Positions 38,165 through 57,828 of a DNA stretch of 64,000 nucleotides are shown here, piece after piece. How positions within the stretch are numbered: the first letter of the stretch is position 1; each line of letters opens with the position of its first letter. The notes beneath the pieces were generated by a model that was given only the letters and a program-made list of their open reading frames with translations, ran no database searches and was not told the origin of the DNA. The stretch is from IMG/VR virus record IMGVR_UViG_3300042261_001312, positions 1-64,000 of that record. One strand, given 5' to 3'. The translations under genes were made by a program, and so were the position numbers.

Positions 38165-38244
38165 CTGACAGGGTGGAATTTGAATCCACTTGCTTGCTAC
38201 TATAGTATATGTAAGCGTTTTAACAAATAATAAACTACCCATCA
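38165..38244 (-). ncRNA. tRNA-like RNA with expanded anticodon arm
   Basis: Acceptor TGATGGG/CCTGTCA, T arm GTGGA-TTCAAAT-TCCAC; GCTT...AAGC stem enclosing 17 nt. Confidence 0.55.
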
Positions 38245-38247
38245 ATT

Positions 38248-38323
38248 TGGTGGAACAGACTGGAATTGAACCAGTATCCACGGATTTTCAGTCCGCCGCA
38301 TAGACCAACTTTGCTACTGTTCC
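38248..38323 (-). tRNA. tRNA-Phe(GAA)
   Basis: GCGGA-CTGAAAA-TCCGT; CCA encoded. Confidence 0.9.
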
Positions 38324-38340
38324 ATAGTTTTAAAAAATAA

Positions 38341-38490
38341 GTTCTGGTGTGAGCCTCATACTCACGACCCCCGTAAACATTACAATCTACTAAATGTCTC
38401 GGAGAATTTTCATACATCATTAGTATTGCCAAGTACCCGTGTATGGGATTCCAACTGAACATTAGGGCAGCGTCCTATGCAGACCAGAAC
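38341..38490 (-). ncRNA. Unidentified 150-nt structured RNA candidate
   Basis: Terminal 8-bp stem GTTCTGGT/ACCAGAAC, internal hairpins, inside tRNA array. Confidence 0.5.
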
Positions 38491-38565
38491 TTCTACATCT
38501 AAAGATTCATGACTTCTTTTCGATGCATAAATCAATGTGATGTAATCCAATGCACATCGATTTTG

Positions 38566-38651
38566 CGGAGGAAGTAGGATTCGGACCCACGCACCTTTTA
38601 CAGCCTAGTTGTTTTCAAGACAACCCTCTTAAACCACTTGAGTATTCCTCC
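38566..38651 (-). tRNA. tRNA-Ser(TGA)
   Basis: GTTGT-CTTGAAA-ACAAC; long variable arm. Confidence 0.9.
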
Positions 38652-38658
38652 ATTTTTG

Positions 38659-38732
38659 TTGTCTTGCTGAGACTTGAACTCAGGACTTCTTCCTTATCAG
38701 GGAAGTGCTCTAACCAACTGAACTACAAGACA
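38659..38732 (-). tRNA. tRNA-Ile(GAT)
   Basis: CTTCC-CTGATAA-GGAAG. Confidence 0.9.
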
Positions 38733-38737
38733 ATATG

Positions 38738-38808
38738 AGTCGGGTACTGGAATCGAACCAGTGATATTGGTTTTGCAGACCACCGCCTTACCGCTTGGCT
38801 AACCCGAC
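38738..38808 (-). tRNA. tRNA-Cys(GCA)
   Basis: GTGGT-CTGCAAA-ACCAA; U73. Confidence 0.88.
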
Positions 38809-38837
38809 AATTATAATTTTCCAGTATGTCAATGAAC

Positions 38838-38872
38838 AAAAAAACCCGAAACTTTTTTGGTTTCGGGTTTTG
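38838..38872 (-). terminator. Attenuator terminator A
   Basis: AAAACCCGAAAC-caaaaaa-GTTTCGGGTTTT plus U-run. Confidence 0.85.
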
Positions 38873-38894
38873 TTTTTTTAAGCAACTTCACAGT

Positions 38895-39014
38895 TTAACT
38901 TTTATGAAAACCAAAACCCGTACCTTTAATATTTCTGCCAAAACAGAATATACCATTTCCATTGCGACTTGATGTCGTGAATGTCGATGTTGATATGGTA
39001 CTAATTGCTTTCAT
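38895..39014 (-). CDS. Leader peptide A: MKAISTISTSTFTTSSRNGNGIFCFGRNIKGTGFGFHKS
   Basis: 120-nt frame; 33 of 39 residues are I/S/T/F/R/N/G/C, the amino acids of the downstream tRNAs. Confidence 0.85.
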   Translation of the reverse strand: MKAISTISTSTFTTSSRNGNGIFCFGRNIKGTGFGFHKS

Positions 39015-39045
39015 AATTCTAATATTTTATTCGTTTTTATCTAAA

Positions 39046-39072
39046 TACGTTGCAAAGATATAAAATGTTACA
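39046..39072 (-). promoter_or_regulatory. Composite promoter of tRNA cluster A
   Basis: TGTAAC-N17-CGTA with nested TATCTTTG and overlapping GTATTTA. Confidence 0.8.
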
Positions 39073-39123
39073 ATATCTGCAAACTATTTTTAACTTTTTT
39101 TAAAAAATATTTTTAATTATTTC

Positions 39124-39435
39124 TTAATCATTTGATTTTGAGGCAGTTTCTTTTGATTTTGATTTTAAACTAAATGTGACAGCATCGATAGTTGTTGAGT
39201 ATCTTTCATAAGAAATCATTTCAAATCTAATTTTGGTAATATCTGAACTATTTTTTAATTTAAAATGACCGTCAAAATCAGTATATGTAGTATCTTTATC
39301 AGTAATGACACTTACACCACATAATGTTTCATGCGTTTGTTTGTCGTAAACAGTACCAGATATTACTGGTTGGGTCATATTACTTGTAAATGTGACCATG
39401 AGTGGAAATAAAAGAGGGAGTAATGTCTTTGGCAT
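39124..39435 (-). CDS. Stand-alone CarboxypepD_reg-like (SusC N-terminal-type) domain with signal peptide
   Basis: ISGTVYDKQTHETLCGVSV...TYTDFDGHFKL. Confidence 0.7.
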   Translation of the reverse strand: MPKTLLPLLFPLMVTFTSNMTQPVISGTVYDKQTHETLCGVSVITDKDTTYTDFDGHFKLKNSSDITKIRFEMISYERYSTTIDAVTFSLKSKSKETASKSND

Positions 39436-46239: not shown

Positions 46240-46331
46240 ATTTATTTGATTTTATCATAAATACGTGGCAAAATAAAAAAGCATCGCACTCATTCAATTT
46301 TTTTGGAATAGGTGTGATGCTTAACATTTTG

Positions 46332-46404
46332 TGTACCCGGGCAGATTCGAACTGCCAGTCTCGCATATTAAAAGTATGGGGTTTTACCATTAAACTACGG
46401 GTAC
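46332..46404 (-). tRNA. tRNA-Lys(TTT)
   Basis: CCATA-CTTTTAA-TATGC. Confidence 0.88.
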
Positions 46405-46435
46405 ATCAATAAATATCACCATTTTTTGGTAACAG

Positions 46436-46520
46436 TGAGAGTAGAGGGATTCGAACCCCCTGAGTATCAAAGTCTTGGTTTTACAGACCAGTGCCACTCC
46501 GCCATCGTGACCGTACTCTC
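46436..46520 (-). tRNA. tRNA-Tyr(GTA)
   Basis: CTGGT-CTGTAAA-ACCAA; long variable arm. Confidence 0.88.
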
Positions 46521-46530
46521 AAATAAATTG

Positions 46531-46604
46531 TGCATCCAGAGGGATTCGAACCCTCGACTCTCGCATTAAAGGTGCGATACTCTAGCCAACTGAGTTACGG
46601 ATGC
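46531..46604 (-). tRNA. tRNA-Lys(TTT) with C33
   Basis: TCGCA-CCTTTAA-TGCGA. Confidence 0.82.
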
Positions 46605-46612
46605 ATACAAAA

Positions 46613-46644
46613 TAAAAAAACCCGAATCTTTCGAATCGGGTTTT
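46613..46644 (-). terminator. Attenuator terminator B
   Basis: AAAACCCGATTC-GAAA-GATTCGGG plus U-run. Confidence 0.85.
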
Positions 46645-46672: not shown

Positions 46673-46762
46673 TTACATACTATTTTGGCAAACCAATCCC
46701 GATTCCATAAGATGTTTCTTATAAGATTTATAACCGTAATATGATTTACCAAATGTTTTCAT
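46673..46762 (-). CDS. Leader peptide B: MKTFGKSYYGYKSYKKHLMESGLVCQNSM
   Basis: 8 of codons 6-16 are Lys/Tyr; downstream tRNAs are Lys, Tyr, Lys. Confidence 0.85.
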   Translation of the reverse strand: MKTFGKSYYGYKSYKKHLMESGLVCQNSM

Positions 46763-46784: not shown

Positions 46785-46827
46785 CAAAGATACACATAAA
46801 TACGTAACTTCCAAATAAAAAGTTACA
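46785..46827 (-). promoter_or_regulatory. Composite promoter of tRNA cluster B
   Basis: TGTAAC-N17-CGTA (46801-46827), GTATTTAT and TATCTTTG (46785-46792). Confidence 0.8.
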
Positions 46828-55391: not shown

Positions 55392-55418
55392 TACGTAAAT
55401 AATGTTTAAAAGGTTACA
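55392..55418 (-). promoter_or_regulatory. ECF-type promoter
   Basis: TGTAAC-N17-CGTA. Confidence 0.75.
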
Positions 55419-56119
55419 TTATTTTTAATCCATTTTCGAATTGTGTTATCACTAACGCCATATTTTTTGCCTGTAGAAACATAACCAATTTCATTAACAT
55501 ACTTTAATAATTCATTCAAATCTGGTCGTACTTTTAATTTACGTAAATTAATGTGGTGACATTTTTTACATGTAGTACTTTCGTTGTTTATAATTGTACC
55601 ACATTTACAAAAATTATGCTTTGAACTCTTTTTAACTTTTTTGACTTTTTTTGAACATTTATTATTTTTACCACCAAATGTTTCTGATTGTGAATGACAA
55701 TTAGGGCATAAAAACTCCAAATTTTGAATTCTATTATCATTATTCACACCATTTTTGTGTTCTAATTGTAATGATAATTTTTTGCCGTTCCAATGACCAT
55801 TATTACCACATTTACATTTATATTCTAGCAACCCTTCACTTACCAAACGATTTTTTAATGTTGCTCTATTTGTATATGTGGAATTTTCAATTAGAATACT
55901 TTCAATTGGAATTCTATTTTTATTTTTCCCACTCTCGCCATAATAATGGTATTTAGGAATTTCAATGTTTCTTTTTTTTAATTGTGATTTAATTGTTGCA
56001 TATCCACCACTACCATTACTACAATAGCCAAATGTTATTAATGCTTCTCTTAATGATTTACTTTGTGACAATACACAAATAATTTCCTTGTTACTGTACT
56101 TCTCAATTTTACTGCTCAT
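55406..56119 (-). mobile_element. HNH homing endonuclease with C-terminal HTH
   Basis: LQLEHKNG.NNDNR..NL..LCPNCHSQ. Confidence 0.88.
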
Positions 56120-56184
56120 AATAATCTTTTTTATATAAATACGATATCGAACAGCAAAAGTATATTTACAGCATAACTAATTTG

Positions 56185-56256
56185 CACGTCTGGAAGTAAT
56201 CGAAACCTCATCAACGGGTTTGGAATCCGCTATCTTAACCATTAGACGACAGACGT
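56185..56256 (-). tRNA. tRNA-Trp(CCA)
   Basis: GCGGA-TTCCAAA-CCCGT; G73. Confidence 0.85.
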
Positions 56257-56284
56257 GTATGTTGTCTGGAATCTCCAGACGTTT

Positions 56285-56755
56285 TTAAAATAATGCTTTA
56301 CCTAAAACATAGCATATTGAACCAAACGCAACCAATTCAAGCCACCAAGTTTTATTTTTAATGTTGGTTAATAATATAATCAAACTCATAATGATAAAAA
56401 ATGCATTCACATAATACATTTTAAAATCAAATGCGATTGATAACTGACTGAATATAACTCCAGCAATTGCGCTGACTTCGTGCATTGTTTTATCATTGTC
56501 TTTGAATGCTGCTGCTGCCCCGACAAAACAAATTCCACCTGTTGCTAAAAACATTAGAAAATTATCAGTCAAATCAATACCAACAATCATCGCTGGAAGC
56601 GCAAAACCCCAACAAAATAATGTGAACAAAAAATTAATGTTCTTCGGTAATACATAATAACTATCCGAAATTGATGGCAATACACCATACTTATTCCAAA
56701 TAAATCCAACATATCCTGCAAATACTGCAAGCATAATAAAATAAAGTGCAATCAT
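56285..56755 (-). CDS. Multi-pass membrane protein
   Basis: Five to six hydrophobic helices. Confidence 0.75.
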   Translation of the reverse strand: MIALYFIMLAVFAGYVGFIWNKYGVLPSISDSYYVLPKNINFLFTLFCWGFALPAMIVGIDLTDNFLMFLATGGICFVGAAAAFKDNDKTMHEVSAIAGVIFSQLSIAFDFKMYYVNAFFIIMSLIILLTNIKNKTWWLELVAFGSICYVLGKALF

Positions 56756-56803
56756 AATTTATATTTTTTCAATAAATACTGATGTCTGGAGATTCCAGAA
56801 ATG

Positions 56804-56876
56804 TATCCCGTCTCAGATTCGAACTGAGAAACTTGGGTTTTGAATCCAATACGGTTGCCAATTACGTCAACGGGAC
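56804..56876 (-). tRNA. tRNA-Leu(CAA), short variable arm
   Basis: TTGGA-TTCAAAA-CCCAA. Confidence 0.82.
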
Positions 56877-56881
56877 ATATG

Positions 56882-56956
56882 TGGAATCGAAGGGCATCGA
56901 ACCCTCACGTCTTCTGAGTGCAAATCAGATGTTTTAGCCAATTAAACTACGACCCC
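56882..56956 (-). tRNA. tRNA-Ala(TGC)
   Basis: GGGGTCG/CGATTCC with G3:U70; TCTGA-TTTGCAC-TCAGA. Confidence 0.9.
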
Positions 56957-56968
56957 ATGTTAATTTTG

Positions 56969-57041
56969 TACTCTCGGTGAGATTCGAACTCACAACATTT
57001 TCATTCTAAGTGAAACGACTCTGCCGTTGGTCTACGAGAGC
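56969..57041 (-). tRNA. tRNA-Leu(TAG), short variable arm
   Basis: TTTCA-CTTAGAA-TGAAA. Confidence 0.85.
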
Positions 57042-57047
57042 ATATTG

Positions 57048-57120
57048 TACACTCGGTGAGATTCGAACCCACACTGGACAGTTTCTTAGACTGACGACTC
57101 TACCGTTGGTCTACGAGTGC
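57048..57120 (-). tRNA. tRNA-Leu(AAG), short variable arm
   Basis: TCAGT-CTAAGAA-ACTGT. Confidence 0.82.
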
Positions 57121-57126
57121 ATATTG

Positions 57127-57200
57127 TGACTCAAGTCGGACTCGAACCGACACTGTATTGCTTTTAAAACAATTGTCTCCTGCCGTTGGACTACTGAGCC
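57127..57200 (-). tRNA. tRNA-Leu(TAA), short variable arm
   Basis: ATTGT-TTTAAAA-GCAAT. Confidence 0.85.
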
Positions 57201-57203
57201 ATA

Positions 57204-57256
57204 ATTTATAGGCGAATTAACCGATATTATACATTTATAGGCGAATTAACCGATAT
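57204..57256. repeat. 24-bp perfect direct repeat at the HNH gene 3' end
   Basis: atttataggcgaattaaccgatat at 57204 and 57233. Confidence 0.85.
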
Positions 57257-57761
57257 AATTCTTATATTTCCTTAAATATATATTTCTTTTAGTTTCTTTT
57301 ATATTATTAATACCACCTTTATTTGTAATTTGTTGTGAATGACAATTAGGACAAATTAATCTAAGATTATCTGGCATACAATTATCTGAATTTCCATCAA
57401 TATGGTCAACTTCTAATGTTAACGGCTTGTCATTCCATTCATTTCCACATCCACATTCAACACAATTTTCGCCATGTAATTTAATCAATATTTTTCGTAA
57501 TGTGACATTCTGATATACTTTACCAGCATAAAACTTAGTCAATGTCTTATTTTCGTATTGAAAATTATTATAACATTTTATGTCACAAAATCTATTAATA
57601 TTTTTCTCTAAAATATTTCCACAATACAAACAATTTTTTATTTCTTTGTTTTTTTTCGGATAAATTTTGTTATTATATTTAGTCGCACAACTTTTATTAC
57701 AAAATTTATTATTTTGATTATTTAAATCATTACCACATTCTAAGCATTTTTTCGAATTCAT
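57246..57761 (-). mobile_element. HNH homing endonuclease
   Basis: LEVDHIDGNSDN...NLRLICPNCHSQ. Confidence 0.88.
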
Positions 57762-57828
57762 GATTATTAATTTTTTTATAAATACTCGATAATTCGAAAT
57801 ATGCAAACATTCTGAAGAAAAAATATTG

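Follow-up and report, generated by a model that had tools for sequence, protein, structure and literature searches.

Putative leader-peptide attenuators in front of the tRNA gene clusters of a jumbo phage

In Proteobacteria, several amino-acid biosynthetic operons are controlled by leader-peptide attenuators, in which a promoter is followed by a short ORF enriched in regulatory codons, an intrinsic terminator, and an antiterminator that uses the 3' part of the ORF and the 5' arm of the terminator and excludes the terminator hairpin (general mechanism reviewed in PMC1183508). These leaders include trpL, hisL, leuL and pheL, as well as the multivalent leaders ilvL (Leu, Val and Ile codons) and thrL (Thr and Ile codons), in which one leader senses several amino acids. 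Attenuation is also applied to the translation apparatus; the pheM leader of the E. coli pheST operon controls an aminoacyl-tRNA synthetase in response to Phe. In Firmicutes, T-box riboswitches likewise choose between a terminator and an antiterminator according to whether a given tRNA is charged, but they bind uncharged tRNA directly, without translation, through a specifier codon and a conserved T-box sequence. Large phages such as T4, T5 and other jumbo or huge phages carry arrays of tRNA genes interspersed with homing-endonuclease genes. These tRNA genes are usually treated as constitutive helpers for codon usage or, more recently, as decoys against tRNA-cleaving defences.

Architecture of the four elements

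The window, meaning the whole stretch of DNA that was analysed, is the first 64 kb (64,000 nucleotides) of a 327,676-bp IMG/VR contig of 31% G+C (IMGVR_UViG_3300042261_001312). The contig is a jumbo phage with 33 tRNA calls in the window, all on the minus strand. A sequence-only reading had proposed that a leader rich in Ser, Thr, Ile, Phe, Gly, Arg, Asn and Cys codons lies in front of one of these clusters and samples nearly every downstream anticodon. Every part of this observation that was checked is in the sequence as described. Element A consists of the following features:

39042..39084 (minus strand), promoter of the Bacteroidota type, with the -33 TTTG at 39083-39080, then 19 nt, and the -7 box TATCTTTG at 39060-39053
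38895..39014 (minus strand), leader ORF A, 39 codons plus a TAA stop, starting ATG AAA, the proposed codon sampler
38943..38969 (minus strand), conserved core of leader A, AGT CGC AAT GGA AAT GGT ATA TTC TGT
38912..38920 (minus strand), region 2, the antiterminator strand, CGGGTTTTG, codons 32-35
38864..38872 (minus strand), its partner CAAAACCCG in the terminator
38838..38871 (minus strand), intrinsic terminator A, a 12-bp stem, 7-nt loop and T7 tract, whose 5' arm is region 3 of the attenuator
33976..38808 (minus strand), proposed regulated unit A, with 16 tRNA calls (Cys, Ile, Ser, Phe, Gly, Ile, a doubtful 'Cys-aca', Asn, Thr, Arg x3, Gly, Ser and an amber suppressor), small ORFs and two HNH-type endonuclease genes

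The first gene of the cluster, tRNA-Cys, begins 29 nt after the T-tract. The tRNA list from 38808 to 34360 matches ARAGORN and Rfam, except for a doubtful 'Cys(aca)' call at 37790-37861 that Rfam does not support. Residues 23-25 of the leader, of which the sequence-only reading was unsure, are Phe-Cys-Phe (TTC TGT TTT), and the peptide contains no L, V, D, E, W, Y, Q or P, as stated. There is no sign in this window of TAG recoding, which would have affected how the ORFs are read. The gene upstream encodes a CarbopepD_reg_2-domain protein and the next one a VWA protein.

Two further elements with this architecture lie within the window, and the distal part of a fourth regulated unit lies at its edge:

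46785..46815 (minus strand), promoter of element B
46673..46762 (minus strand), leader ORF B, 29 codons with 5 Lys and 4 Tyr, with region 2, GGAATCGGGA, at 46706-46697
46614..46644 (minus strand), attenuator terminator B
46275..46604 (minus strand), regulated unit B, tRNA-Lys, tRNA-Tyr and tRNA-Lys (46604-46331), then an end-of-operon terminator (46322-46275)
58996..59038 (minus strand), promoter of element C, near-identical to that of element A
58883..58969 (minus strand), leader ORF C, 28 codons, rich in Leu, Val, Ala, Asp, Glu and Trp, with region 2, CTGTCGGGTA, at 58893-58884 overlapping the stop codon
58816..58852 (minus strand), attenuator terminator C
56184..58779 (minus strand), regulated unit C, tRNAs Asp, Glu, Val, Leu(taa), Leu(aag), Leu(tag), Ala, Leu(caa) and Trp, with inserted endonuclease-like ORFs and a membrane-protein-like ORF
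62820..63911 (minus strand), distal part of regulated unit D, tRNA-His, an ATP-grasp ORF and tRNA-Gln x3

Before the region upstream of the last cluster was inspected, it was predicted to contain a leader rich in His, Gln and whatever else the cluster contained. The flanking sequence from IMG/VR shows two tRNA-Pro genes upstream of tRNA-His, preceded by a promoter, a 24-codon leader with the core P-Q-P-Q-Q-H-P, and a terminator; the leader, terminator and two tRNA-Pro genes lie just beyond the window end, at L034 8434-9109 (the prefix L denotes individual loci). Between them, the four leaders cover 19 amino acids, and tRNA-Met stands alone.

Terminators B and C have an internal mismatch or a 9-nt loop; they were missed by a first terminator scan and found with an RNAfold-based scan. 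Of about 40 terminator-like hairpins in the window, only the three leader units have the promoter motif within 320 nt upstream. A sigma-70 promoter scan was uninformative, with counts equal to the shuffled expectation, and the exact Bacteroidota-type promoter pattern returned only the source contig from IMG/VR.

Correspondence between leaders and tRNA clusters

In leader A, 33 of 38 residues belong to the eight amino acids served by the downstream tRNAs, whereas 0.41 is expected from the long ORFs of the phage (P = 8e-9). At the codon level, 32 of 38 codons are readable by the downstream anticodons under conservative wobble rules (expected 0.40, P = 3e-8). Moreover, 13 of the 14 distinct anticodons are sampled, all but Arg-CCT; in simulation from the phage's own codon usage, the mean is 8.4 and P = 0.008. 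The other two reading frames of the same DNA give 0.21 and 0.39, so nucleotide composition alone does not explain the match. Some leader residues nonetheless have no downstream tRNA, namely Lys, Ala and His in A, and Asp, Glu, Leu and Val in the 3' parts of relatives' leaders, where RNA pairing constrains the sequence. By eye, the order of leader codons does not follow the order of the tRNA genes.

The other leaders track their own clusters. The match is 19 of 27 residues for leader C (P = 5e-5), 7 of 23 for leader D (P = 2e-3) and 9 of 28 for leader B (P = 0.02). Leader B is weak on its own, and its force comes from the conserved Tyr/Lys run in relatives (YYYGKKSYKK). In the 4 x 4 comparison of leaders with clusters, every diagonal cell is enriched and every off-diagonal cell is at or below expectation. 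Leader C uses CTC, TTA, TTG and CTA, one codon for each of the four Leu isoacceptors downstream.

Annotated records of cultured phages gave no help; a DNA search of the phage collection found only tRNA-to-tRNA matches, and the neighbouring VWA protein is at most 33% identical to proteins of cultured phages. A search of the genome collection for a host returned only phage contigs binned as candidate-phyla-radiation MAGs. Protein-anchored searches, by contrast, returned about 45 loci from related jumbo phages of 320-365 kb, in which the VWA protein is 56-77% identical and synteny is kept in the order D, C, B, VWA gene, A. Leader A is present in 19 loci, B in 17, C in 7 and D in 4, each with its terminator. 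For A, the motif TTTG-N17-21-TAnnTTTG starts 69-101 nt upstream of the ATG in 17 of 18 leaders. The class-A ORF is conserved at 39-45 codons in most of the 19 loci, although L022 reads 64 from its first in-frame ATG. The nucleotide alignment of class A has 59% mean column identity. The amino-terminal third of the peptide differs in nearly every relative yet stays rich in Ile, Ser, Thr and Asn, whereas a core of nine codons (AGT CGY AAY GGR AAT GGT ATA TTC TGT) is strongly conserved, with synonymous changes at third positions and replacements mostly within the allowed amino-acid set. Almost every one of these codons is read by a different tRNA species of the cluster, and the core pattern is found in 20 IMG/VR contigs. 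Frame 0 gives the best match in 49 of the 50 leader-cluster pairs scored and clearly exceeds the other two frames in 46; in the other four it is equalled or weak. This is the pattern expected if codons are selected for the tRNA that reads them, not for the peptide they build.

More distant phages have clusters of other compositions, and leaders that follow them. In L045 and L035, a K-, R-, Y-, T-, L-, G-, D-, W- and E-rich leader precedes Trp, Glu, Asp, Lys, Lys, Arg, Gly, Thr, Gly, Leu, Tyr, Tyr; a second leader in L045, rich in N, I, S, Q, F, P, H and V, precedes Gln, Pro, Pro, Phe, Asn, Val, Ile, Ser, His. In L051 and L041, S-, K-, H-, F- and W-rich leaders precede Lys, His, Phe, Ser and Trp, and in L052 an S-, R-, W-, M- and F-rich leader precedes Ser, Phe, Met, Arg and Trp. 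With eight independent leader-cluster pairs, the true assignment has the highest summed enrichment of all 40,320 permutations. The feature is clade-limited, however, as several clusters in distant relatives have no leader (L043, L053-L055 and parts of L045).

These observations bear on two alternatives. Short ORFs are common in AT-rich DNA, and a 39-codon open frame is estimated to have roughly a 4% chance at this base composition, but a chance ORF in an AT-rich spacer is rejected by the statistics above and by conservation of the ORF in about 30 contigs that share about 59% nucleotide identity. It is also very unlikely that the small ORFs encode functional micro-proteins, each with its own terminator, with the tRNAs transcribed by read-through or from promoters of an unrecognised type. 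The conserved class-A core (SRNGNGIFCS) and the amphipathic or hydrophobic appearance of leader C could be read this way. However, the sequence outside the core drifts freely while composition is kept, and several unrelated peptide families (classes A-D in this clade and three or four more in distant phages) each match the tRNAs behind them.

Independent promoters driving most cluster A tRNAs are likewise not supported. The space between T-tract and first tRNA is usually 10-40 nt, too short for the promoter type used here, and no minus-strand terminator lies inside cluster A. In 109 kb of class-A clusters, only 8 promoter motifs occur, close to chance (about 4.6 expected from the window's shuffles); their positions are not conserved, and 10 of 18 relatives have none. 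The window has one, at 38047-38078, 13 nt before tRNA-Ile(tat), which may give that part of the cluster some independent expression.

Alternative RNA folds and a proposed switch

The full-length leader A folds better than shuffles (z = -3.9), forming the terminator with region 2 paired to the start-codon region. When the RNA is cut off before the 3' arm of the terminator, region 2 (38920-38912) pairs instead with 38872-38864 in the 5' arm (duplex -14.6 kcal/mol). In nearly every unit of every class, a segment in the last 4-10 codons of the ORF is complementary to the 5' arm of that unit's own terminator (-9 to -20 kcal/mol; z typically -3 to -6), with energies similar to those of the terminator itself. 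The complementarity follows the arm where the arm differs: ACGGGTTTTG for A, GAATCGGG for B, GTCGGGT for C, GAATGGGG for D, and CGAGTCTT in L015, whose arm reads AAGACTCG, a compensatory change. Of 15 representatives, 12 pair best with their own arm, and 0 of 100,000 permutations do as well (P < 1e-5), a covariation that a protein-coding constraint would not produce. RNAalifold on the whole MAFFT alignment showed covariation of the terminator stem but recovered only the terminator and two invariant hairpins inside the ORF; because indels misalign the antiterminator, it was tested sequence by sequence.

Folding with a masked ribosome footprint, as the sequence-only reading had proposed, indicates that the alternative fold depends on ribosome position. 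In the nascent RNA, the helix between regions 2 and 3 has P = 0.96 with no ribosome or with the A site at codons 26 or earlier, and about 0 with the A site at codons 28-38. Across 51 units, a ribosome at codon 8 allows the antiterminator in 50, whereas a ribosome six codons before the stop mostly abolishes it; in about ten units, region 2 is sequestered when no ribosome is present and freed by one at codon 8. At equilibrium, the full-length leader folds into the terminator whatever the mask (P = 0.94 for most ribosome positions), so the switch must be kinetic, as it is in the trp leader. How the terminator wins after normal translation is not fully explained, since in element A a 30-nt footprint with the A site on the stop codon only just reaches region 2 (P = 0.86 for the helix between regions 2 and 3). 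Re-pairing of region 2 with the start-codon region is one possibility.

Taken from sequence alone, the likely explanation is that element A is a ribosome-mediated transcription attenuator gating a phage tRNA operon, although translation of the ORF, stalling, the direction of the switch and the physiological trigger are inferred. In the proposed sequence of events, transcription starts at the Bacteroidota-type promoter, and a ribosome translates the leader while RNA polymerase moves on to the terminator. If every charged tRNA the leader asks for is plentiful, the ribosome runs into codons 28-39 and covers region 2, the terminator hairpin forms, and transcription stops before tRNA-Cys. If any of those charged tRNAs is scarce, the ribosome stalls earlier, region 2 pairs with the 5' arm of the terminator as soon as that arm emerges, and the polymerase reads into the tRNA cluster. 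The new tRNAs relieve the stall, making a closed negative-feedback loop. In this scheme, elements B, C and D work the same way for their own clusters.

A less specific reading, considered unlikely, is that the terminator is a leaky insulator or general throttle and that the leader reports overall translation capacity or transcription-translation coupling, for example host shut-off or ribosome availability, with codon content secondary. In its favour, the alternative pairing responds to any ribosome position rather than to particular codons, and the terminator always wins at equilibrium. However, this reading does not explain why four leaders in one genome have mutually exclusive amino-acid sets that match their own clusters, why leaders change along with cluster content in distant phages, or why leader C uses one codon per Leu isoacceptor.

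A further reading is possible but tentative: the four leaders may form a phage-borne surveillance and replacement circuit for the whole tRNA pool. Loss of any one tRNA species, through host anticodon nucleases or other tRNA-depleting defences, host shut-off, or a codon-usage mismatch, would stall the ribosome and switch on the replacement tRNAs until decoding recovers. On this reading, the compact element B would be a dedicated counter-defence module; Lys and Tyr tRNAs appear to be nuclease targets in other systems. This would be the first case of attenuation controlling tRNA genes, and the first regulated phage tRNA supply.

Comparison with described attenuators and phage tRNA clusters

Like the tRNA clusters of T4, T5 and other jumbo or huge phages, those described here are interspersed with endonuclease genes. 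No leader-peptide attenuator in front of such clusters was found in full-text searches of one literature library, which is not proof of absence. A demand-driven, self-limiting supply would change how the cost and benefit of phage tRNAs are understood and would show that phages monitor the decoding state of the infected cell codon by codon. Because the leaders predict from sequence alone which tRNAs lie downstream, they help annotation of huge-phage genomes, and they could also serve as compact, codon-specific sensors for synthetic biology.

Although terminator and antiterminator folds alternate here as they do in riboswitches, an untranslated T-box-like sensor of uncharged tRNA or of another ligand is very unlikely. 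No T-box (RF00230) or other riboswitch family matches even at E <= 10 in 38800-39100, and only tRNAs reach gathering threshold anywhere in the window. Furthermore, the match to the tRNA set is specific to one reading frame, an ATG-AAA start and an in-frame stop are kept in all relatives, and one RNA could hardly bind 13 different tRNAs. The element also falls outside the Rfam leader families; Thr_leader (RF00506), Trp_leader (RF00513) and His_leader (RF00514) score 21.6, 14.3 and 14.0 bits against thresholds of 55, 41 and 49, with matches covering only the terminator hairpin. Nothing in Rfam matches the insert upstream of tRNA-Pro.

The pheM leader shares with these elements the application of attenuation to the translation apparatus, but it senses a single amino acid, regulates a protein-coding gene, and is cellular rather than viral. 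The multivalent ilvL and thrL leaders share the layout, with promoter, short enriched ORF, intrinsic terminator and mutually exclusive antiterminator in the same arrangement. Unlike these leaders of biosynthetic operons, however, the phage elements use Bacteroidota-type promoters, and they sample up to 13 anticodons and 8 amino acids, often with one or two codons each, rather than runs of one codon. They precede tRNA genes, with inserted endonuclease and small ORFs, instead of enzymes, so that the sensed quantity is the product's own activity.

Further leader units and an insertion

Beyond element A, the same phage carries three additional units in which a leader precedes tRNA genes, two of them inside the window and one just outside it (L034 denotes the flanking contig sequence):

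46815-46275 (- strand): element B
59038-56184 (- strand): element C
L034 8434-9109 (contig about 65.4-64.7 kb, just outside the window): element D

Element B is a compact, self-contained operon consisting of a promoter, a Lys/Tyr-rich leader of 29 codons, an attenuator, tRNA Lys-Tyr-Lys, and an end terminator at 46322-46275. Element C has a promoter near-identical to that of element A, and its leader, which is rich in Leu, Val, Ala, Asp, Glu and Trp and uses four different Leu codons, is followed by an attenuator and then by tRNAs for Asp, Glu, Val, Leu x4, Ala and Trp. Element D comprises a promoter, a 24-codon leader with a Pro/Gln/His core, a terminator (arms CCCCATTC and GATTGGGG), and then tRNA-Pro x2; the unit continues into the window with His and Gln x3. 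In this phage only, about 240 nt of G+C-richer sequence (L034 8690-8925) lies between terminator D and the first tRNA-Pro. This sequence folds well (-77 kcal/mol, z = -3.5) with paired ends and matches no Rfam family, and may be an unknown structured RNA or a mobile insert.

An insertion appears to have affected a leader itself. In one relative (L064, the contig of locus L017; positions 1098-2113), the first 30 codons of leader A are duplicated 878 nt apart, flanking an insertion. Only the second copy continues to the terminator, so an insertion seems to have landed inside the leader.

tRNA genes, intervening genes and a promoter-like motif

Several features lie within or outside the tRNA clusters:

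37790-37861 (- strand): tRNA-Cys call with anticodon ACA
33976-34047 (- strand): amber-suppressor tRNA (anticodon CTA)
52727-52625 (- strand): tRNA-Met and its terminator
38047-38078 (- strand): promoter-like motif
36211-36969 (- strand): likely homing-endonuclease gene, HNH by Pfam
34454-35137, 55406-56119, about 57760-57260 and about 58655-58010 (- strand): other likely homing-endonuclease genes

The tRNA-Cys with anticodon ACA was called by ARAGORN but is not reported by Rfam's tRNA model, and it may be an aberrant or degenerate tRNA. The amber-suppressor tRNA is the last gene of cluster A. However, only 2 of 56 long ORFs in the window end in TAG, and reading through adds fewer than 10 residues, so there is no sign of TAG recoding in this part of the genome. 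tRNA-Met is the only amino-acid class outside the four leader-controlled clusters; it directly follows a protein gene and is followed by its own strong terminator.

Likely homing-endonuclease genes lie between tRNA genes. While one of these is identified as HNH by Pfam, the others contain Cys-rich, HNH-like or GIY-YIG-like motifs that were judged by eye from the sequence. On the attenuator model, these genes would be co-regulated with the tRNAs. Additionally, a full promoter-like motif (TTTG-N20-TACATTTG) lies inside cluster A, 13 nt upstream of tRNA-Ile(tat), although it is not conserved in position among relatives.

Contigs in the genome collection and the gene upstream of element A

Contigs carrying the leader-A core (L074-L077, from the genome collection) are deposited as MAGs of Paceibacterota, Patescibacteria, Zixiibacteriota and Bdellovibrionales. 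One of these is the same 362,763-bp scaffold as an IMG/VR phage contig, and they look like jumbo-phage contigs binned as small-genome bacteria. Within the window, the gene just upstream of element A is as follows:

39124-39435 (- strand): gene for a 103-aa protein with a CarbopepD_reg_2 domain

This domain appears to be typical of Bacteroidota outer-membrane proteins, in agreement with the Bacteroidota-type promoters.
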